Assembly: GCF_001194135.2 (NCBI RefSeq)
Contig: NC_068985.1
Span: forward strand, 33,112,603 to 33,167,650
Length of the DNA stretch: 55,048 nt
Direction of reading: 5' to 3'
Origin: Octopus bimaculoides
Lineage: Eukaryota
The notes beneath the pieces are model-generated. The model did no database searches and was not told the origin of the DNA. It saw only the letters and a list, made by a program, of their open reading frames with translations. Below, in pieces: positions 4,371 through 49,054 of this stretch; position 1 is the first letter of the stretch; the number at the start of each line of letters is the position of its first letter. Position numbers and translations under genes: made by a program.

Positions 4371-4683
4371 TTAAACTCGATAAAGCAGTTGTAACCATGC
4401 AGTTTTACATTTAAAGCCAGTCATTTCATAAATGAGGCTTGGTGACTGCTTGGTTTTGGGGATGACTTGCAAATCACCGAAAATCAGGTTGCCACAGTTA
4501 TTTGTCTCTACTTGGTTAAGGAAGGGGAAGTTCCAATCCATTTCTATAGCTCAGTGGTTAGCAATACAAAGTGTACCCAGCTGCACAAAATGTTGTTTTC
4601 AACAGCATTAACAACTAAAACAAACCCTTCCATTTTCATGCTTTCTTAATAGTTTGAAAACTGCATAATAATAAAAATAATAA

Positions 4684-4891
4684 TTCTTTCTACTGGAAGC
4701 ATAAGGCCTCAAATTTTGGGGAAGGGATTAAGTTGATTACATCGACCCCAGTGCGTAACTGGTACTTATTTAATCAACCCTGAAAAGATGAAACTCAACC
4801 TCGGTGGAATTTGAACTCAGAATGTAGCAGCAGACAAAATACTGCTAAGTATTTCACCCAGCGTGCTAATGATTCTGCCAGCTCACCGCCT
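4684..4891 (-). mobile_element. tRNA-derived SINE (aggcggcgagctggcaga-head family)
   Basis: Reverse complement of the head and body seen at 48915 and 35682. Confidence 0.8.
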
Positions 4892-4921
4892 TAATAATAA
4901 TAATAATGATAATGATAATGT

Positions 4922-5722: not shown

Positions 5723-6130
5723 GAGAAATGAAAAGCAAATTGAACCCTGGTACAATTGAATCTCAAGACATAAAAGAGCTAGAAGAAATACTGCAAGGTA
5801 TTGTCTCCAATGCTCTCATGATACTGTCAATCCACTACAATAATAATAATTATTATTATTATTAGTGGTGGTGGTGGTGGTGGTGGTGGTGGCAGTAGCG
5901 GCGGCAGCGGTGGTGGTATGGGGGCATACACTGTAACAGCATGTCACTGCATCACCATTTGTTGGTGATTTCCTATTTCTGTTGGATAATGCTTTTGCAC
6001 CACTTGGCAACAACTCTTCAAGATTTGAGGAGACTTGTCACCAAACCTCAAGATAAAATGCCTGCTAACTAAATTAATATGCACTAACGTAATAATAATA
6101 ATAATAATAATGATGATGATGATAATTACA

Positions 6131-9773: not shown

Positions 9774-12384
9774 CCATGCAGGAATGCATATTAGTACTCT
9801 CTAATAAGAGAAATGACTCATAGCAATCACTGTCATGACAGTGAAATTGTATGTATATATATTTTATATCAATTATCATATCTTTGCTTATTATTTCTTT
9901 TATTTAAATCTAGATTATTGGCATAAAATATATAAACTGAGACTGGTAAAAGAAAATGAATACTAGAAACTTTTAGAAATATCCCATATCTATGAAAGAG
10001 GGAACTTGTATAGATGGAAAAAAAGTGCTAATCCAGTTCCTCTTTGCATCTAAATTCAACTTTTTACACTTTTGCTTTAGCCTGGCCTGTTCTATGTTTT
10101 GATTTTGTTTGTTTTTTTTAGTTTTTTTCAAAGAAATGTGAGTGACTTGATCTTACTTTAGTTATCTCATGGAGACATTTTGTCTCTATAAAAATTGTTT
10201 AGCCCAAATCCGGCATTCTTATTTTTCAAACATGTAGGAACATGTCATTCAATGTGTTCTATTTTTAAAGATGGTGTGAATGTGATTTGAAGATTTAGCT
10301 GTTATTTCTAGTAGATAGAGTGGCCATATAGAGGTTCTGTAGAGCAAAAGGAAAGAGTCAGTAAGCAAAACTGGCTGAATCTTCAGTAAAATAAATTTCC
10401 ACTATATTGTGTGTGCATATGAAAACGTTTAGAGATACAGATATCTCTAGTTCTAGTTAGCTACCATAACAAGCACATAAACTGAATTTTCAATGTTTAA
10501 TCAAAGTAGACTCTTCATACTTTACAGTAGAAGTAAGTTTTTTTTCCCCCTTTTACAAGTAAGTATTGCAGCTATGTTGCAGCTTGTATCAACTTTCAAG
10601 GCATTTAAAGGAAGTTTCTCTCATTTTCTTCTTTTGCTTTCAACTTTCTTTCTCTATATCGAAATGTCATACCTGTTGCACTTTATTCTCATAAGTAAAT
10701 TGTAAAGAGGGACTGCTAACTAATAAAACTCATTTAATTACAGGATGTCTTCTTTTTACATGAATAAACTTCCATTCACTATTACATATTCTACTGCAAA
10801 ACAGATTGGGATATTTGACAATTAAGGTACATCACTATTCCATTGGCATAGATCATCAAGAGGTCTTTCAGTTAGTTTACTTTGCCATAATATGCAGAAA
10901 AGATTGTAAAGTTTAAATATTTGTAATAATTTAGTTGAATTATATTATATCACTTGCCAGTATGACAATTTATTTCTGTTTGTTTTGCATTTTTTTTTTT
11001 TTTTGTATGGATATTTTTACTTCATTATTTTCTTTATATCCTCATATTTGACATCTCAGTAAGGCATCATCATTTATAGATTTAACAAAATTCACCTTCC
11101 AAGAAATGTGCCACTTTGACACCATAATTGCACTTATTAATATATCGATGAAAAGGTCTTAAGCTCAGAATTTTTGAGGATTGTTTAATCAAAATGGACC
11201 CTTCATACTAAAGTCACTTTTTAAAAAAATCATTTATGGCTTGCTCTTAAGTTTTCATTTATTTTATTTTGTTTTTCAGAAAAGTTTTGCTCTGACAATA
11301 ACTTTCCTAACATGACTTTACCACTGCTACACTGTTACACTTACAAAATGCAGTTCATGAAAGAACTAAGATTATTAAAATATCAACACTGTTGTTTTTA
11401 ATATTTGAACAATATATCGAAATATTCAAATTCTAATTATTTCACATTTTACAAAGTATTGTGTAGTTTTAAATATATAAATATATACTTTATTTTTTTT
11501 AAAAAAATCTCCCTTTCATCATTTTTACAATAACCATAAATCACAGGTAAGAGGAGTAAACTGACATCACTCAATTGAAAATCAAATCTTTTCTTTGCAA
11601 ATTCTGATCATTTAGACACAGATTTGCATTTGCATGTGTGCGTGCATGTGTTATCTATGCATTTATGCAAGTGTATATGCATTCATGAGTGCATGTATGT
11701 ATATATGTGTATGTACTCCTGACTATTCATCAGACACACTCTCCTATGAGTGAACATCACCCTTCTACACTTCTAACTGCTACTACTATCCATCCCTCTC
11801 CCCCAGTTACTCATTAATTTCTGTCACACTCTCGCACCTTTGACCATTTCCACAACTAACTATCACTTGCTCTCTCTTGTTAGCAAACATGGAGCTTCCA
11901 TTAGTCTCTTTCTTATTACCATCAGCTATTACTATCTCTTTTATTTCTCAATTCTTATCTCATTCCAGTTCATTTTCTGCAATCATCTTTTCTACTCAGT
12001 CTGTTGGTCATTTTACCCAGAATGAACAGTGAAGACCTTTTTCTCTTGTGGGGAACATGACAATCTCACTATCACTGATGCATTTCATGCATCAGTGTTT
12101 GCACAACGAGTAGGAAAAGGATGACTCCATAGGCTTGTCTTATCAAAGACATAACAAGACCTCAAGTGCTGGTGCCATGGTAAAATGCACCCAGTAAACC
12201 CAGTGGTTGGTGCTAGAAAAAGCATCTGACTATAGAAACCAAGCCTAAACAAGACATGGTTCTCTGGCCCATGTAGGAGGGTTGTAACTCGAAATGAGAA
12301 CTGATTCATATCTTGATGGCCCATTCATATTATTCTAGCATGGAAAGCAAACATAAAATAATAATGATGATACATATATATATA

Positions 12385-12837
12385 TTCTTTTATTTGTTTC
12401 AGTCATTTGACAGCGGCCATGCTGGAGCACCGTCTTTAGTCGAGCAAATCGACCCCAGGACTTATTCTTTGTAAGCCTACTACTTATTCTATCGGTCTCT
12501 GTTGCTGAACCACTAAGTTACAGGGACGTAAACACACCAGCATCGGTTGTCAAGCAATGCTGGGAGGACAAACACAGACACACAAACATATACATACATA
12601 TATATATATATACGACGAGCTTCTTTCAGTTTCCCCCTACCAAATCCACTCACAAGGCTTTGGTTGGCCCAAGGCTATAGTAGAAGACACTTAGCCACGG
12701 TGCCATGCAGTGGGACTGAACCTGAGACCATGTGGTTGATAAGCAAGCTACTTACCACATAGCCGCTCCTGCACCTATACTTACCACACAGCCACTTCTG
12801 TGCCTATACTTACCACACAGCCACTCCTGCGCCTATG
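12385..12837 (-). mobile_element. Near full-length tRNA-derived SINE with triplicated 29-bp 5' head
   Basis: Family body (cagtcatttgacagcggccatgctggagcacc..aaggctttggttggccc) plus three tandem acttaccacayagcc.ctyctgygcctat units at 12750-12836. Confidence 0.85.
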
Positions 12838-19230: not shown

Positions 19231-20016
19231 AAGAAATTAAATGAATATAGATCAAAATATATATATATAAAACAGAACAACTAAAGCATTTACAAACAAA
19301 GAAGATTAATAAAGTATCTTTTCATAAATTGTAGTTGAGGTGTATTTCTAGTATTTTCAAACTCTACAAAATTTACATGTAGAAAACAGCAAAGAAAGTT
19401 AAACAAAGCATAAACATACTTAGAACATTCATGAGTAGCACAATGGGCCAACAGAAACAAACAACAATAGTGCAAAAATAGTACTTGAAATTCATCATGA
19501 ACTTTACTAGTCCTATCTGGGCATCTATTCTCTCCACAATAAACTATGTAAGATAACATAAAGTAACATATACCACACTCACAGACTATTTACACAACGA
19601 AATTAAAATATTAAGTGCAAGTCAACATACAAAGAATACAGTTTGTTACTGCAGGAAGTTTCAACTGTCCTAGTCTTTGACACTACACAAAACAAAACTC
19701 TTCTAAACACACAGACATACAACTATTACAACATTCTAAAAGTAAAAAGAAAAATGCAGAAAACCAAAATGTTGAAAGAGTCCACTGTTGTTGTCATTGT
19801 CAAGTACTGTGAACCTTTGTGTTGTCATTCAACCTGCTGGAAATAGTAACCAAACTTTCCTAAAACCACACTGACTATCTTAAAAAAAGAAGGAAGGATG
19901 TATTGGATACAAAGATGCATTATGTCCAAATGAAAGCTGGGATGATCATAGTTGGAATCTCTTTGATCATATGTTTGCTCAAACAAGGCTGATCAGGGTT
20001 TAAACAACCAAAAGAA

Positions 20017-20077
20017 TAAAGATTGCTTGCCAACATAACAAGGCAGTCCTGGTTTAGGATGAATGTTGCTGTAATTT
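20017..20077. repeat. 61-bp direct repeat, copy A (partner at 22145-22205)
   Basis: taaagattgcttgccaacataacaaggcagtcctggtttaggatgaatgttgctgtaattt; 4 mismatches to partner. Confidence 0.95.
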
Positions 20078-20177
20078 AGCTCCAGGAGACATCGTCTCCA
20101 GCTGGCTATACGACACGATCTGTCCTTATATTTTCAAACAAGGGAATCTAGCACCCCCACTCAGCTCAAAACAATAT

Positions 20178-20220
20178 CTGTGTATCATGATTTCCAGGTT
20201 ATTTCCCTTCATCAGCACAA
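20178..20220 (-). ncRNA. Minimal type I hammerhead ribozyme-like motif
   Basis: Minus strand reads TTGTG CTGATGA AGGGAAATAACCTG GAAA TCATGA TA CACAG: stem I ttgtg/cacag, core CUGAUGA, short stem II, GAAA, palindromic stem III ATCATGAT, AUA cleavage triplet. The base of stem II has one non-canonical nucleotide. Confidence 0.6.
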
Positions 20221-20239
20221 TAAATGTTCGGTTAGAGGT

Positions 20240-22003
20240 TTATTCTTTATTCTAGGCACAAGGCCTAAACACAGGGAACATACACAGACATGCAGGAACA
20301 AAAACTCATGAAAGGATGAATGTAAAATGAATTAAATTACAATGAAAATGAGATTACCATCTCGCTCCCACTCCGAGATGAAACCGTGAATTCCTTTTTC
20401 CTTTAAAACTTTACATTTTAAATAACAATTTCCAGCCCTGCTCTGAAGCGAAACCACAACTTTCCTTTTCGTTTTCACCTTACAATTTTAAAGAAAACAA
20501 TTTAAACAAATGTTCTTTCAATAGATACAGGATTTACTTATTTTCCATTTTTTTTAACAAAAACTTTAACCAAATGTTTTTCTCAGTCCTTCACAGTCTT
20601 TAAAATAAATTACGACTTACCACTTCATCTTCTCCTTTTCATCCACATAATTCACCACCAAGGCGCAAGGATCAACATCTACCTCCGGCCCCAGTGGATT
20701 CACTCTTTCATAATGTCTTTCAATTCTGAAATTTTTTTTTAACTTTTGGGTGTCCTATTTCATTTTAAAATCTTGCTTCTATTTGTGTCTTGCGTGTTTG
20801 TGTTTTTTGTCTCTGCATTTCTTTAATTCTTGGCTTTCCTGTGATTGTGTCTGTGTTTCCATGTGTTCATTTGACTGTAATTCTGCGTGTTTCATCTGTG
20901 TTTATGTTTTTAGGTTTCCGTAATTCTGAGTTATCTTGTTTCTGTTTGTCTATACTTCTGTGCTTTTGCATGTCTGTGTGTTTGAGTATCAGGGTCTGAA
21001 TGTTTCTGTACTTGTAAGACCTTTACTGGTGATCCTACTGGTAAATCTTCCCTGTTTCTCGTCATAGGTTGGGTTATCTCTTCCATTGCTTTGTACTTCT
21101 TCAATTCCACTATCGTTGGTGATTTCCTCCTCTCCCTTTTCCTTGCTTTCACCTCCCCAAAATTCCTGTCTTGTTCTGTTATCTGTTTTTGCTGTTTCTC
21201 CACCATTATATTCTCCTGAATACTCTCCTCTACAATTTCCACTGCTGCTCTAGGGCATTTCTTTCTCAAGTGCCCTCTTTCACCACATTCGTAACACTTT
21301 GGAGGTCTCCCCTCCAACATTATTTCCAGCTTTTCTTCATTTGGTAGCTCTAAAGTTTCAGGTCTTTCATTGTAATATTTCAGGCTCACTGCACAAATCA
21401 TCTCTAATCCGTAGCCCCATCACTTCACTTGTTGGGTTCAGCCCATCTCCATGTCTTCGCTTTCCTTCCTTATCTCCAAATAAAAAATTGCGGCTATGAT
21501 CCACTCTGGATCTATCCACAGTGGGATTCTTCCCATCCTAATTCTTACAATTCTTTTGTCCAAACAGTTTGGCATCAAAGTTCATTTTTCTCCTTGTATC
21601 AGTCTGTTGGAGGTTTTTTTCCGCCTCCTCTTCTGATATAAAGGTTACCACTATAGATGCATATCTCTTTCCTCTTCTTCCTGCAGCACGTATTCAATTC
21701 TTCTAGTTTCATTCGAAAATGTTCTGAATATGACTTGTCTTCTTTTCCATTTTCACTTTTTCCTCCCCTGGCCGGGTCATTTTTATATTTGACCCTTCCT
21801 TCTCTATCATACTACTATATTTCTTTATGAGCTCTCCATTCCACTGTAATATCTCCTGTTTCAGTACACGTGGGTCTTGGAGAACTTGATCACCAGTAGC
21901 TTCTGCATAACTTCTCATTTTTCTCAATTATTCACTCCCACCCAACAATGGTGGTTTCACACAAAAAATTCAGCTAGAGTTCTTCAAAAAACAACAAAAA
22001 AAT
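20240..22003 (-). mobile_element. ORF1/gag-only retroelement cassette with CCHC zinc knuckle, decayed, between 15-bp direct repeats
   Basis: Broken ORF from about 21918 (MRSYAEAT) via RIRMGRIPLWIDPEWIIAAI to LEGRPPKCYECGERGHLRKKCP (CX2CX4HX4C) and a basic tail; no endonuclease or RT follows; 3' end aataaagaataaa; flanks tgttcggttagaggt (20225-20239) and tgttcggctagaggt (22004-22018). Confidence 0.75.
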
Positions 22004-22144
22004 TGTTCGGCTAGAGGTGGTGCTGCCAAATTCCCATTCGAAATATATCATTTTCAAAGTGACAACTAGTCACTGATCTATAAATTAGAAAATTACTATT
22101 TTTAAATCTCACCACAAGAGATATTCAGCAACAGTACTCTGGAG

Positions 22145-22205
22145 TAAAGATTGTTTGCCAACATAACATGGCAGTCCTGGTTTAAGATGAATGTTACTGT
22201 AATTT
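22145..22205. repeat. 61-bp direct repeat, copy B (partner at 20017-20077)
   Basis: taaagattgtttgccaacataacatggcagtcctggtttaagatgaatgttactgtaattt. Confidence 0.95.
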
Positions 22206-22504
22206 TCTAACAACCATCAGATTCTGGATTTCTAACAAAACTTTTTATTCATATTCCTTAAAATCTTTATTTCAATCTTTTTAATAATTTATAATACCTA
22301 AAATTTTGGGGGAAAAATCAACAAAGTAAATATTTGATAAGTTTTATTTCACTTTTGAAATAATATTCATTCATCTTTGTTACCCTCATAGCTTGTATAA
22401 TATTATCCCTTTCCCACAGTAAAATTAACATTATAAAAATAATATCCTTTTCAAACGAAATTTGGAAACAAATTTCAATAAAACTTTTTATAATAAGAAA
22501 TATA

Positions 22505-22630: not shown

Positions 22631-23085
22631 CTATGATGAAACAAAAGGACATAGAACATCTTTTATTCCATTTCTGAATGGTGTTCTGTCAACTTTAATC
22701 CCAAGATTTTCAAGACGTTCAGAAGAAAGATGAGCATTATAGGGGCGCTTTGTGCCTGGATTACTTTTATCATCAGCAACAATATGTGACATGTCCAAAC
22801 CAAAAATGTCAGCCATTGCAATCATCATATCATATTTGGTCATGTTATCATTCCCACTCCAGTGGAACACACCAGATATTTTCTCTTGCTGGAAACACTT
22901 TTTTTCTGATATTAGCATAATCAGAGAAGCCAAGTCATCACAGTGGGTCGGGTAACGTCGCTCGTAATGAGAAGAGTGCAAAGTAACACCAGAATTCAAA
23001 ATACTTTTTAGTAAGATTGTTACAGCACTTTCTTCTAAGAATTCCACTTGACCGTAAAGAAGTGGGACTCTCAAGATAGCAAAGT
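22631..23085 (-). CDS. MAT2B: MAT2B last coding exon
   Basis: Acceptor ttccatttgcag; (G)AC-FAILRVPLLYGQVEFLEESAVT..RRYPTHCDDLA..GVFHWSGNDNMTKYDM..RPYNAHLSSERLENLGI..TPFRNGIKDVLCPFVSS*, matching MAT2B C-terminal motifs. Confidence 0.95.
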
Positions 23086-23434
23086 CTGCAAATGGAAAAT
23101 AATAATGAAAGTTGACTTTTAAACATAAGCACAAAAAAAATGTTTAATATGTATAATGACAGATTTTATATTTACTGTTTCTCTTCACACACATTATTTC
23201 TGTGCACATTCTTTTTCAACTGCATGTATACTAAACTAGATTATTATCTAAGCTTCGGAAACTGATCACAGTAGATCCCACTTAATGTATCCAAAATGGA
23301 TTGGGATGGAATTTTTACACATAAAATCTCTTGTTTAATAAATCCAAACCATCACTTAGTAAATCCAATTGTTGCTGCTTCTTTCTAAAGTGTCAACAAG
23401 TGGCAGCGAATGAATAAAGTGTTTTTTTTTCACT

Positions 23435-35175: not shown

Positions 35176-35560
35176 TAGGGCAGCGAACTGACAGAATCAG
35201 TAGCATGTCAAGCAAAATGCTTAGCAGCATTTCATCAATCTTTACATTCTGAATTCAAATTCAACTACCTTTCATCTTGGGGGGGGGGGTGTCAATAAAT
35301 AATTACCAGTTGACCACGGGGTTCAATGTAATCAACTTATACCCTCCTCTGAACTTGCTGGCTTTGTGCCAAAATTTGAAACCAATATTTAGAATTACTG
35401 CATCCAGTTAACATTAGGAAAGATATCCAGCCATAGAAACCATGCCAACATTGACATTGGAGCTCAACATAGTCCTGCAACTTATTAGACAAACCATCCA
35501 ACTCATGCCAGCATGAAAAATTGATGTTAAATGCTGCTGCTGCTGCTGATGATGATGATG
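35176..35560 (+). mobile_element. Decayed tRNA-SINE fused to an RTE-tail fragment
   Basis: agggcagcgaactgacagaatcagtagc head; catccagccatagaaaccatgcc..(GAT)n tail. Confidence 0.65.
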
Positions 35561-35681
35561 ATTGCATTAGTTTACAAATATCAAACTATTTAATAAATTT
35601 TAATGTGATTTTTTAAAATGAGAATAAATTGCTTGGTAGGAAACTTAACTTTGAGTGTGTGATATGTTCAGGCAGGGACAA

Positions 35682-35897
35682 GGTGGCAAGCTGGCAGAAT
35701 TGTTAGCACGCCAAGCAAAATGTTTAATGGCATTTCATCTGTCTTTGCATTCTGAGTCCAAACACCACTGAGGTCAACTTTGCCTTTCATCCTTTTGTGG
35801 TTGATAAAATAAGCACCAGAAGAACACTGGTGTCGATTTAATCAACTTACCCCTTCCTTCAAACCTGCTGGCCTTGTACCAAAATTTAAAACCAATA
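35682..35897 (+). mobile_element. tRNA-derived SINE, CpG-decayed
   Basis: ggtggcaagctggcagaattgttagcacgcc..; same family as 48915. Confidence 0.85.
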
Positions 35898-36699
35898 TTT
35901 TGGAGCAGGAATCATTATGATAAAAAATTTGGAGAGTATGTTGAATAGTCACCTTTCCAACCTTTTCTGTTTCTTTTCTTTTTCAAAATTTTTTGGGGGA
36001 TTCCTATGTGTTCTACAACAGAGATTATGATTTTAAAGCTTGTCCAATAAACATGATGAAAAAAGCAGAAGTATATAGATGCAAACGATATTTTGTCTTC
36101 CCACTAATAAAAAGGGTGGAGGGGAGATTTAATGTTTCTGCGTGAGCTGGTAAGAGAGAGAGAGCAAGAATAAATATGCATGTGCATTCCTTATTACTCA
36201 GACAGATCTTATTATTTCAGAATCGTGAATTTTTCTTTTTGTGTATATGGGACTATATCACCCTATGTTTTCTTTCATTGTATGTGGTTTGAAGGAGATT
36301 TGGCTGTTATTTCTAGCATGTTGAGCCACTATACTGAACCCTTCCTCAAGATGTCTGCGGAATCAGTTGGTATCCACGCACGCGCATATGAACGGACAAG
36401 TTTCAAAGTAACCTGATGATTGGTTCTGAGATGGGTGTGGATATTTCGAAAGCCTTAACTTAATTGTTTTGCTTTAAATTGTCCAGTCTATTTTTGTACA
36501 TTTTCAGTTTCATCTTTCTTTCATTTTCACGTTAAGAAAATACTGGTGCCCCCGTTTTGAACAAGATCCGGAAAGTATTCTACTTTTGCTAACCCATCCT
36601 TTTTTTAATTATAATAAACCATTTCTTACATTGAAAACAGGTCACAAATTTTAAAAAAGAAAACTCATGAATAGTATCGATCAGAAATTGACTTTATCA

Positions 36700-47655: not shown

Positions 47656-48914
47656 GATAGCTTTTTTCAGTTTCCAAGCTACAGTAGAAGACTCTTAGGA
47701 GACATCTATACATAATTCATTCTTGTCGTTATACATGCTTCCAGTGGATGTTTTAAATTTTAAAAGTTTAAAAAATACTGTCAATTTATAAGGCATATTT
47801 TAAATATTGAAATTTTGTTATAACTTAAATGATTCAAGTACACTCTCTTACATATTTTCTTTAATAAGGATTTCTTTTGAAATTCAAATCGAAACCCGAG
47901 TCAGAATTTTAATGAGTTTTTTTCCAGTAAAAAAAAGGTTCATCTTGAGAGGAAAGTCAAGATTTGCATGTGTTTAAATGTACATTTGGTTATATATACT
48001 TATTTAACTATTGAAGTGAGGAATTTGATTAGCAATCGACAATTTACCGTCTGTAGTAACTTGGATTTAAATCTTCATAACACTTCAAAGCTGTTAATAT
48101 TTTTTTCAAACTTATTACATTCTCTCTCACCCTCACCTACTCTAGCTGGGTCAGCAGTGAGCATAGATAGCATATCTGTGTATCTGTGCTACAAATCAAA
48201 TCATTGTTTAGATTCTCTTCGATTTTTAAAAATAATTTTGTTAAAGATAAACATGACAATATTTATGTTTAGAGTGACCTTCCTCTAATCTTAATATTTG
48301 AAACCTATTATGTTTCAGGCTAGTTTAAAGGTCAGACTTTTTATTTGATTACTATCAATTTCCTGTTAATATATACGGAAAATTTCAACAAAACTTTGCT
48401 CAATCCGTAGAATTGTTATATGTTGTATTGAAGTTTGAAGAAAGTTTCATTATTCCTACCCCTACTCATGAGTAACCGAATCAATACCACTACCACCACC
48501 ACCACAAAAAAAAACACCGCCGCCGCCACTACCGTCACTATTATCATTAGGAAATCAAAGTATCCATAACGGAGTTCTAACAATAAAAAAAATATATGAC
48601 TTGCTAAACTATTTTCCTCCCCATAAAACACATTTTATGCATTGATGATGCGGAAATAACGCGTTGTCCATTGCTGGGATATAAGTAACAATAACAACGA
48701 CGACGACAATAACAACAACAACAAAAATGTGTAATTTAAATTTTTAAGCCCCACCCCCACCAAACCAAATAAGGCCATGTGTGTNNNNNNNNNNGTGTGT
48801 AAGAAAATAAAAATATTTACTAACAGAAAAGTACGCTAGTAAAATAATCTCTTACATACCCCTTTTTAAAATCCCAGCAATGACCCCAGGCTCTCCAATA
48901 TTTTACAATTATAA

Positions 48915-49054
48915 GGCGGCGAGCTGGCAGAATCGTTAGCACGCCGGGCGAAATGCTTATCGGTATTTCGTCTGTCTTTACGTTCTGAGTTCAAATTCCG
49001 CTGAGGTCGACTTTGCCTTTCATCCCCCAAAATTTCCGGCCTAGAGTAGAAAAG
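48915..49054 (+). mobile_element. Young, internally deleted tRNA-SINE with a perfect 18-bp TSD
   Basis: aatattttacaattataa at 48897-48914 and 49055-49072; head ggcggcgagctggcagaatcgttagcacgccgggcg. Confidence 0.9.

Follow-up and report, generated by a model that had tools for sequence, protein, structure and literature searches.

The 55,048-nt stretch of Octopus bimaculoides DNA analysed here (the window) contains on its minus strand a decayed retroelement unit, which on balance we read as two nested elements: a cassette derived from a long interspersed nuclear element (LINE) that carries open reading frame 1 (ORF1) only, coding for a gag-like protein, inserted site-specifically into a short outer element of Penelope style. 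Coordinates given without a locus name are positions of the window, and all retroelement features are read on the minus strand. An original prediction for this DNA had left two options, namely (a) an ORF1-only L1/Tx1-type element at a fixed site in a hammerhead-ribozyme repeat and (b) a composite non-autonomous element with an RNA 3' end defined by self-cleavage. Option (a) is the better supported of the two: the homology of its ORF1, the fixed site and the target duplications bear it out, and what falls away is the name given to the target.

Inspection of the window confirmed the predicted succession of repeat, 15-mer, cassette, 15-mer and repeat. The direct repeat measures 64 nt (22205-22142 and 20077-20014; 92% identical), and its similarity probably reaches ~83 nt (from 22218 and 20095, respectively); neither the repeat nor any other part of the region has a further copy in the 55-kb window. 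The 15-mers ACCTCTAGCCGAACA (22018-22004) and ACCTCTAACCGAACA (20239-20225) are identical at 14/15 positions, and AATAAAGAATAAA is found at 20251-20239. Allowing up to two mismatches, the 15-mer has two matches compared with 0.03 expected, and 0 of 100 shuffles reached two. Removal of the cassette and one 15-mer leaves, as calculated before, an empty monomer of 349 nt (2128 minus 1779). The cassette itself consists of a T-rich 5' end, an 85-nt 5' untranslated region (UTR), ORF1, a 3'UTR of ~370 nt and a terminal AATAAAGAATAA, and it has no poly(A). Several frameshifts and stops in the ORF agree with the decay noted earlier, and this copy is dead.

Searches with the stitched ORF translation detected Octopus proteins only. 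An octopus-only profile matched 456 proteins among 1.84 billion representatives; the named matches come from Octopus vulgaris, O. sinensis, O. bimaculoides and Argonauta hians, the rest from eukaryotic ENA contigs. Three O. vulgaris loci (L001-L003) were taken from contigs encoding gag-protein matches, and a fourth (L004) has an intact ORF of 379 aa; in a second and a third protein search most matches were distant ENA relatives, and P0009 alone added an octopus locus. Together with the window, these loci give five copies of the cassette in ~190 kb of octopus DNA. The whole arrangement of the window is present in L001, with ACCTCTAGCCGAAC at both junctions. Orthology of the two loci was considered and rejected, the flanks sharing dispersed repeats only. 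A break in the BLAST alignments at ~22001 had been read as a cassette without the repeat; this was also dropped, and L002, L003 and L004 were found to carry a divergent outer element. The ~125 nt upstream of the cassette are present, in diverged form, in all five copies, and the downstream part of the outer element is present wherever the cassette 3' end survives.

All five cassettes occupy one homologous site and point the same way. The left boundary follows the homologous GCAGCACC, GCAGCCCC, GCAACGCC, GCAGGCC or GACAGCC in 5/5 copies, which represent three subfamilies, whereas the right boundary varies among copies (about 2, 10 or more, 14, 15 and 19-20 nt). A fixed left and a variable right boundary therefore point to a precise first nick and a loose second nick. 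Duplications of 14-20 nt flank the cassette in the window, L001 and L004: ACCTCTA[G/A]CCGAACA is present twice in the window (14/15 identical), ACCTCTAGCCGAAC twice in L001 (14/14 identical) and TGCTGGGTTCG[T/G]CTA(G)CTCT twice in L004, where the halves read TGCTGGGTTCGTCTAGCTCT and TGCTGGGTTCGGCTACTCT. These duplications are lineage-specific; they are near-identical within a copy and differ between subfamilies, and an 8-nt stretch occurs in both halves of L004 and in neither half of the window or L001. The pattern therefore argues for independent target-site duplications and thus for site-specific insertion. The L003 copy is a chimera: its outer segment is 85% identical to L002 compared with 78% to the window (32/34 in the first block, by eye), whereas its ORF is 87% identical to the window and 70% to L002. 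This combination favours repeated insertion at one site over the spread of one mobile composite.

A separate observation concerns the letters of the duplicated targets. Comparing 22004-22018 of the window with 9905-9924 of L004 revealed a 10-mer, GTTCGGCTAG, which the two have in common only in opposite orientation (CTAGCCGAAC in the window).

The gag protein relates the cassette to LINEs. Alignment of the gag profile with P0157 gave an hhalign probability of 96.8% (E 2.3e-10, 179 columns), and on the P0157 contig (locus L005) this protein is followed by ORFs with Exo_endo_phos and RVT_1 domains. In a PDB comparison the reverse transcriptase (RT) of L005 was closest to human L1 ORF2p (3e-35, versus 1e-14 for R2). 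LINEs with a gag-family ORF1 followed by an apurinic/apyrimidinic-type endonuclease (APE) and RT were found in octopus DNA as well, at 63900-68560 (+) and 53950-48840 (-) of L003. Both are decayed, near full-length and not inserted in the outer repeat, and they are candidate relatives of a trans-acting partner. The LINE at 63.9-68.5 kb terminates in ...AATAAAGTAGC / ...ATTGAAATAAAGTAGC and, like the cassette, lacks poly(A).

Four copies (window, L001, L002 and L004) follow one collinear layout, in which 400-700 nt without an ORF2 (APE/RT) separate the ORF1 stop from the cassette end, and a search of the window cassette in every frame confirmed that it has no RT or endonuclease domain. In L003 an ORF1 of the window type is joined directly to the middle part of an L1-like RT (10934-12289, +), which is 72% identical to the RT of the 63.9-kb LINE at the same locus. 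The far side was lost to insertions of short interspersed nuclear elements (SINEs); most simply, the RT belongs to a nested 5'-truncated LINE, but it could also mark an internally deleted autonomous relative. In the four informative copies the cassette does not run on into an ORF2, one of the features by which the original prediction was to be judged wrong, and L003 is ambiguous in this respect. By homology, then, the cassette is a predicted ORF1-only derivative of an L1/Tx1-type LINE, where the likeness to the L1 superfamily is that of its relatives' RT and not of this element.

The bounds of ORF1 (ATG at 21918, TAA at 20619-20617) were set against the intact 404-aa O. bimaculoides relative P0002. 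A gag-like ORF is thus present in decayed form as described before, but it is longer than had been implied. The protein comprises an N-terminal region, a region resembling an RNA recognition motif, one CCHC knuckle, a low-complexity linker and a C-terminal NPLGP..VVNY..MKW motif. The predicted CX2CX4HX4C knuckle (21296-21255) passes the Pfam zf-CCHC threshold (22.1 bits, cut-off 20.8) and was the sole match in a PDB profile search with the gag. Modelling of the gag with AlphaFold2 on an alignment of eight sequences gave a predicted local distance difference test score (pLDDT) of 38, too low for the model to be used. In the relatives P0009 (379 aa) and P0003 (257 aa) the reading frame is open. 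Comparison of the L002 and L004 ORFs showed proportions of nonsynonymous and synonymous differences (pN and pS) of 0.27 and 0.74 and a ratio of the corresponding rates (dN/dS) of ~0.11. The gag is under purifying selection, and the low dN/dS between L002 and L004 therefore indicates that the protein was kept by selection during diversification of the family.

Purifying selection on the ORF would also be expected of a host gene family, i.e. an ORF1 domesticated like vertebrate ZCCHC3 and spread by duplication, with incidental flanking repeats. Gene annotations of three octopus species and Argonauta include intact ORFs, and a splice-site-like signal and AATAAA are present. This origin is nevertheless very improbable in view of the many dispersed and mostly decayed copies with retroelement termini and target duplications; the copies moreover occupy non-syntenic loci, and where a gene model includes the gag, it is a chimera that joins it to unrelated domains. 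Nothing here suggests a host role.

Several further features of the cassette are conserved. GGTAAGT at the ORF1 stop is retained in four copies amid otherwise divergent sequence, and the pyrimidine tract with AG (20264-20272) followed by GCCTTGTGCC, 25 nt before the cassette end, is the best-conserved block of the cassette 3' end; both signals are kept in four copies that represent three subfamilies. They may delimit a retained intron of ~350 nt, with GGTAAGT and AG as putative 5' and 3' splice sites, or GGTAAGT may be a U1-binding signal; splicing would add just Pro-Cys-Ala to the protein. Two hairpins in the 3'UTR (window ~20455-20425 and 20385-20355, -), of the type GGTTTCGC...GCGAGGC and CATCTCG...CGAGATG, are kept in L001, L002 (where they are duplicated) and L004 despite diverging flanks. 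They could form an RT-recognition element.

The outer element is ~350 nt long and AT-rich, with the order H, target site, X, M and T (Table 1). A 5'-truncated copy of T lies directly upstream of the full unit in the window (22218-22142), L001 (9091-9172), L002 (9620-9780) and L004 (9770-9820), and the length of this partial copy is 83 nt in L001 and >200 nt in L002. An inverted partial copy abuts the upstream copy in L001, L002 and L004; the window copy is without one. A solo element without gag in L002 (6880-7150, +) shows the succession (TA)n, inverted T, direct T with a 55-nt tail (E) and (TA)n, and (TA)n flanks were found in L002 and L004. A tRNA-headed SINE in L003 (39850-40490, +), with the head GGTTAAGAG...GAGTTCGATTCC and a tail of r-X'-M-T plus ~50 nt, has a tail homologous to the r-X-M-T-E module of the outer element that includes GTAGCCGAACA. 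Across copies, outer-element 3' ends lie at the T end or ~50 nt further on, in sequence that also opens the full unit. Solo, SINE and inverted copies in L001, L002, L003 and L004 stop at ...GAGATTTAGAAAT..., inside segment E, and the insertion in the window ends in ...AATCTTTATTC.

Partial tandem pseudo-long terminal repeats (pseudo-LTRs), an adjacent inverted 5'-truncated copy, a short end tail and microsatellite targets are known from insertions of Penelope-like elements (PLEs) and their non-autonomous derivatives (PMC8557442). The annotation of O. vulgaris includes L1-Tx1 as well as Penelope families (PMC13282606). Its architecture thus suggests that the outer element is a Penelope-style non-autonomous element. 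A pattern scan of metagenome contigs for the T segment gave 0 matches. TGGTTGTT(T)A on both sides of the unit had been considered as an outer target duplication and was dropped, its upstream occurrence aligning within the T segment.

The constant association of the cassette with the outer element raises the question whether cassette and repeat are one non-autonomous element, in which gag entered once or a few times and the unit of T', H, cassette, X, M and T is transcribed from the upstream repeat. A Penelope-like RT/GIY-YIG enzyme would then recognise the shared 3' module and the gag would act as the element's own RNA chaperone, which is option (b) without the ribozyme. We consider this possible, though not probable. 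It would explain why the outer-element parts are arranged alike in 5/5 copies, why the window and L001 have identical junctions and the same ~83-nt upstream copy at unrelated loci, and why three copies stop at exactly the same T end. The L003 copy starts at the outer-element 5' end and not inside the cassette, and the 3' module is common to the SINE and the solo fragments, as for a tail used in trans-mobilisation. The retained GGTAAGT...AG and the CCHC knuckle have parallels, PLEs being known to keep introns and a PLE with an upstream zf-CCHC ORF, Chlamys-2_cBra, having been described (PMC8557442). Drift after a single insertion, however, would not produce duplications that match within each copy, differ between subfamilies and have an 8-nt indel in both halves. 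The L003 chimera and the cassette's own conserved LINE-like termini likewise speak against one composite, and no Penelope RT partner turned up, although no search was aimed at one. Option (b) as first worded, with a 3' end defined by self-cleavage, has less support than option (a).

A number of points weigh against nested, site-specific insertion. The right-hand duplication can be checked in three copies only, being deleted in L002 and missing in L003. The junctions of the window and L001 are identical and could equally be copies of one composite, and the L003 chimera could have arisen by recombination between composites. All cassette copies were found via the gag protein, which makes this a biased sample, and no unoccupied full-length outer element was seen in the octopus DNA examined. 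The same DNA contained no autonomous LINE with the cassette UTRs or in the same target, and the 3' similarity between the cassette and the autonomous LINE of L003 is marginal (p ~0.05 versus shuffles). Inverted-plus-direct structures can in principle be produced by other than Penelope-type insertion, and the failure of a Penelope RT with the same 3' module to turn up, with no search aimed at one, counts here too.

The hammerhead-like string begins, as noted previously, 4 nt past the second 15-mer and reads UUGUG-CUGAUGA-AGGGAAAUAACCUG-GAAA-UCAUGAU-A/CACAG (20220-20178; the slash marks the notional cleavage). Its core of CUGAUGA, GAAA and U-A is complete and in the correct order (20215-20183, -). 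Helix I has 5 bp, helix III is the palindromic AUCAUGAU, which pairs either over 3 bp around a 2-nt loop or, as a palindrome, between molecules, and helix II, above an A.G mismatch at 10.1/11.1, has three pairs including a G.U. Searches with the Rfam hammerhead families (Hammerhead_1, _3, _II, HH9, HH10) revealed nothing at E<=10, whether 3.2 kb or just 121 nt around it were searched, and neither the window nor the 112 kb of L001-L003 contained a match that reached gathering score. A descriptor just loose enough to find the string gave 0.107 matches per dinucleotide-shuffled window, 9% of the shuffles having at least one, and its fold is not more stable than shuffles (z = -0.68). The string alone is therefore not more than chance. 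PLE hammerheads sit at a similar 3' position (PMC8557442), and since the string lies on the sense strand, ~165 nt from a Penelope-style 3' end, a chance origin is less likely than the raw 0.1 per window. We put the odds that it descends from a real ribozyme of the repeat lineage at roughly even, and judging from the sequence it is unlikely to be active or functionally used by the cassette.

The string varies among relatives. L001 has GACA for GAAA (A14 to C) as its sole core change and keeps helices I-III, whereas L004 reads UUGAUAA, with two core substitutions, and cannot form helices II and III; the outer repeats of L004 are ~10% diverged from each other. The L003 SINE with the same 3' module has no hammerhead core. 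Between the window and L001, 8/43 positions of the motif differ, which equals the background divergence and gives no sign of constraint. The target cannot be upheld as a hammerhead-ribozyme repeat, given the absence of Rfam support, the changed cores in L001 and L004 and the SINE without the core.

As a minimal type I ribozyme, active now or formerly, in a retrozyme-like repeat, the string would cut the co-transcript 56 nt downstream of the cassette and set the 3' end of the template RNA, and tandem copies would release circularisable unit-length RNA. In favour of this function, the core is complete and ordered, helix I has 5 bp, and helix III is a palindrome, a type that functions in dimers (PMC7229834); the position on the sense strand is also that of PLE hammerheads (PMC8557442), and chance placement in that ~350 nt and on that strand amounts to roughly 4e-4. 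In L001 a CCU-to-CUC swap preserves helix II beside the single core change, and monomer size and low GC content resemble those of animal retrozymes (PMC7229834). Activity is nonetheless improbable: Rfam models fail even on the 121 nt, helix II is short and carries the A.G mismatch, the fold is no better than that of shuffles, and the motif diverges like the rest of the element, is disrupted in L004 and is lacking in the SINE. Each locus moreover has one motif and no tandem array. The window holds only 1.2 units, with one motif, and no other copy in 55 kb, whereas animal retrozymes form head-to-tail arrays of 170-400-nt units, each with an active type I hammerhead, and are expressed as circular RNA. 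The more specific idea that a gag-only LINE derivative has specialised on one site in a Penelope-derived retrozyme, with a functional minimal hammerhead just downstream of it, is quite improbable. Were it true, the host repeat would supply both a promoter (the pseudo-LTR) and ribozyme-defined 3' processing, and the template RNA would end in target sequence that primes precise re-insertion, a dependency linking LINE, Penelope-like element and ribozyme.

Two other loci contain comparable strings. In L003, 62614-62670 (+) reads CUGAUGA-GGGG...CCC-GAAA-...U-A, with a better helix II and no Rfam match; it lies inside a unit of ~400 nt with terminal inverted repeats (~62425-62505 and ~62750-62830) and probably arose by chance. 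Paired descriptor matches at 5943 (-) and 6038 (+) of L002, with identical TTTTCCTGATGATTTCATTTGAATGAAAC..., are located in an insertion that splits a copy of a common SINE-like repeat.

For nested insertion we propose the following course. An autonomous octopus LINE of the same superfamily would provide endonuclease and RT in trans, and the first nick would fall at a single constant point on the outer element's bottom strand (between ...GCAGCACC and ACCT... as read on the top strand). Target-primed reverse transcription would copy in the cassette RNA, and a variable second nick would leave 14-20 nt of the target duplicated. The constant sense orientation of the cassette makes it probable that its transcription proceeds from the outer element's upstream repeat, and hence together with the outer element. 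The outer element itself would depend on Penelope machinery, and the hammerhead-like string, as a part of it, may be a relic of a Penelope- or retrozyme-type ribozyme.

Table 1. Positions of the nested elements and their parts in the 55,048-nt window
Feature	Position	Strand	Basis
T', upstream partial copy of the 3' terminal segment of the outer element (pseudo-LTR)	22142-22218, firm core 22205-22142	-	Direct repeat with 20077-20014, 92%; alignment to ~83 nt as in L001
Segment E, first ~48-55 nt past the T end; 3' "tail" extension of insertions in relatives	22094-22141	-	Ends of relatives at GAGATTTAGAAAT
H, 5' body of the outer ~350-nt element	22019-22093	-	Upstream of the cassette in 5/5 copies; L003 copy starts exactly here
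Left copy of duplicated target, ACCTCTAGCCGAACA	22004-22018	-	Same position in L001; TGCTGGGTTCGTCTAGCTCT instead in L004
LINE-derived ORF1-only cassette	20240-22003	-	Collinear with L001, L002 and L004, all without ORF2
Decayed ORF1/gag	20617-21918	-	Several frameshifts and in-frame stops
CCHC zinc knuckle CYECGERGHLRKKC	21255-21296	-	Pfam PF00098, 22.1 bits
GGTAAGT, consensus 5' splice-site string overlapping the stop codon	20615-20621	-	Kept in window, L001, L002 and L004
Pyrimidine tract, then AG and GCCTTGTGCC	20255-20272	-	Alignment of window, L001 and L004
Right copy of duplicated target, ACCTCTAACCGAACA	20225-20239	-	
Hammerhead-like string	20178-20220	-	Descriptor match; notional cleavage between 20183 and 20182
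3' module of the outer element: M (20177-20096) and terminal segment T (20095-20014)	20014-20177	-	Homologous to 3' ends in L001 and L002 and to the tail of the tRNA-headed SINE in L003

The surroundings of the unit contain a gene and further repeats. At 22634-23134 (-), a match to Pfam RmlD_sub_bind (57 bits, covering positions 142-282 of the 287 in the profile) marks the last coding exon of a MAT2B-like gene. The retroelement follows on the same strand, starting ~415 nt past the stop codon of this gene, and thus lies in or just beyond its 3'UTR. Several short dispersed SINE-like repeat families with many copies in L001-L003 are found at 12383-12782, 4680-4893, 35180-35900 and 48911-49025.

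If insertion is indeed site-specific, octopods harbour a selected gag-only LINE lineage that lives exclusively inside another class of retroelement and borrows its RT, and nesting of the Tx1 type would extend to a Penelope-style target and to an ORF1-only element. Such a lineage would offer a natural system for asking what ORF1 proteins contribute alone. For annotation, the family explains a set of "uncharacterized CCHC proteins" in the Octopus and Argonauta gene sets, including chimeric models, and the loci document Penelope-style non-autonomous elements and a SINE with one common 3' module. Literature searches revealed no cephalopod element described as both gag-only and target-specific in this way. 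Both ingredients are already of known kinds, namely Tx1-type targeting of other transposons and ORF1-only LINEs.

LINEs of the Tx1 clade insert into other transposons: Tx1L is found in the piggyBac-derived Tx1D of Xenopus, the crocodilian Tx1-Mar in Mariner-N4, and Tx1-8_Crp and Tx1-4_AMi in LTR retrotransposons (PMC4494074). The octopus cassette shares with them an APE-type lineage, a defined site in another transposon family, the resulting composites, a precise nick and a target duplication. It differs in having no ORF2 and in its target, which is a short Penelope-style retroelement and not a DNA transposon or LTR element. The likeness to Tx1 lies in the site-specific habit, and the similarity of the RT, seen through relatives, reaches the L1 superfamily only. 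HAL1 of mammals and HeT-A of Drosophila encode ORF1/gag only, are kept under selection and receive their RT in trans; the octopus cassette is likewise ORF1-only, with a gag under selection. HeT-A belongs to the Jockey clade and targets telomeres, whereas HAL1 is not site-specific, and neither is known to lie inside a Penelope-type repeat.

The outer element resembles non-autonomous PLEs and animal non-LTR retrozymes in being short and AT-rich and in its pseudo-LTRs, inverted 5' copies, tail extension and (TA)n targets (PMC8557442; PMC7229834; bioRxiv 10.64898/2026.07.22.740005), and it also has a hammerhead-like string near its 3' end. In contrast to retrozymes, which are non-coding, it does not form a tandem array, its ribozyme is at most putative and it contains a nested protein-coding unit. 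A parallel to the combined structure is provided by PLEs with an ORF1, such as Athena/Terminon elements and the Chara braunii element Chlamys-2_cBra, which has a zf-CCHC ORF upstream and a canonical 3' hammerhead (PMC8557442). They have in common with the octopus unit a CCHC gag-like ORF, Penelope-type termini and the 3' position of the hammerhead. Those elements, however, encode a PLE RT, whereas the octopus gag is homologous to LINE ORF1 and bounded by target duplications, and therefore represents a separate insertion.

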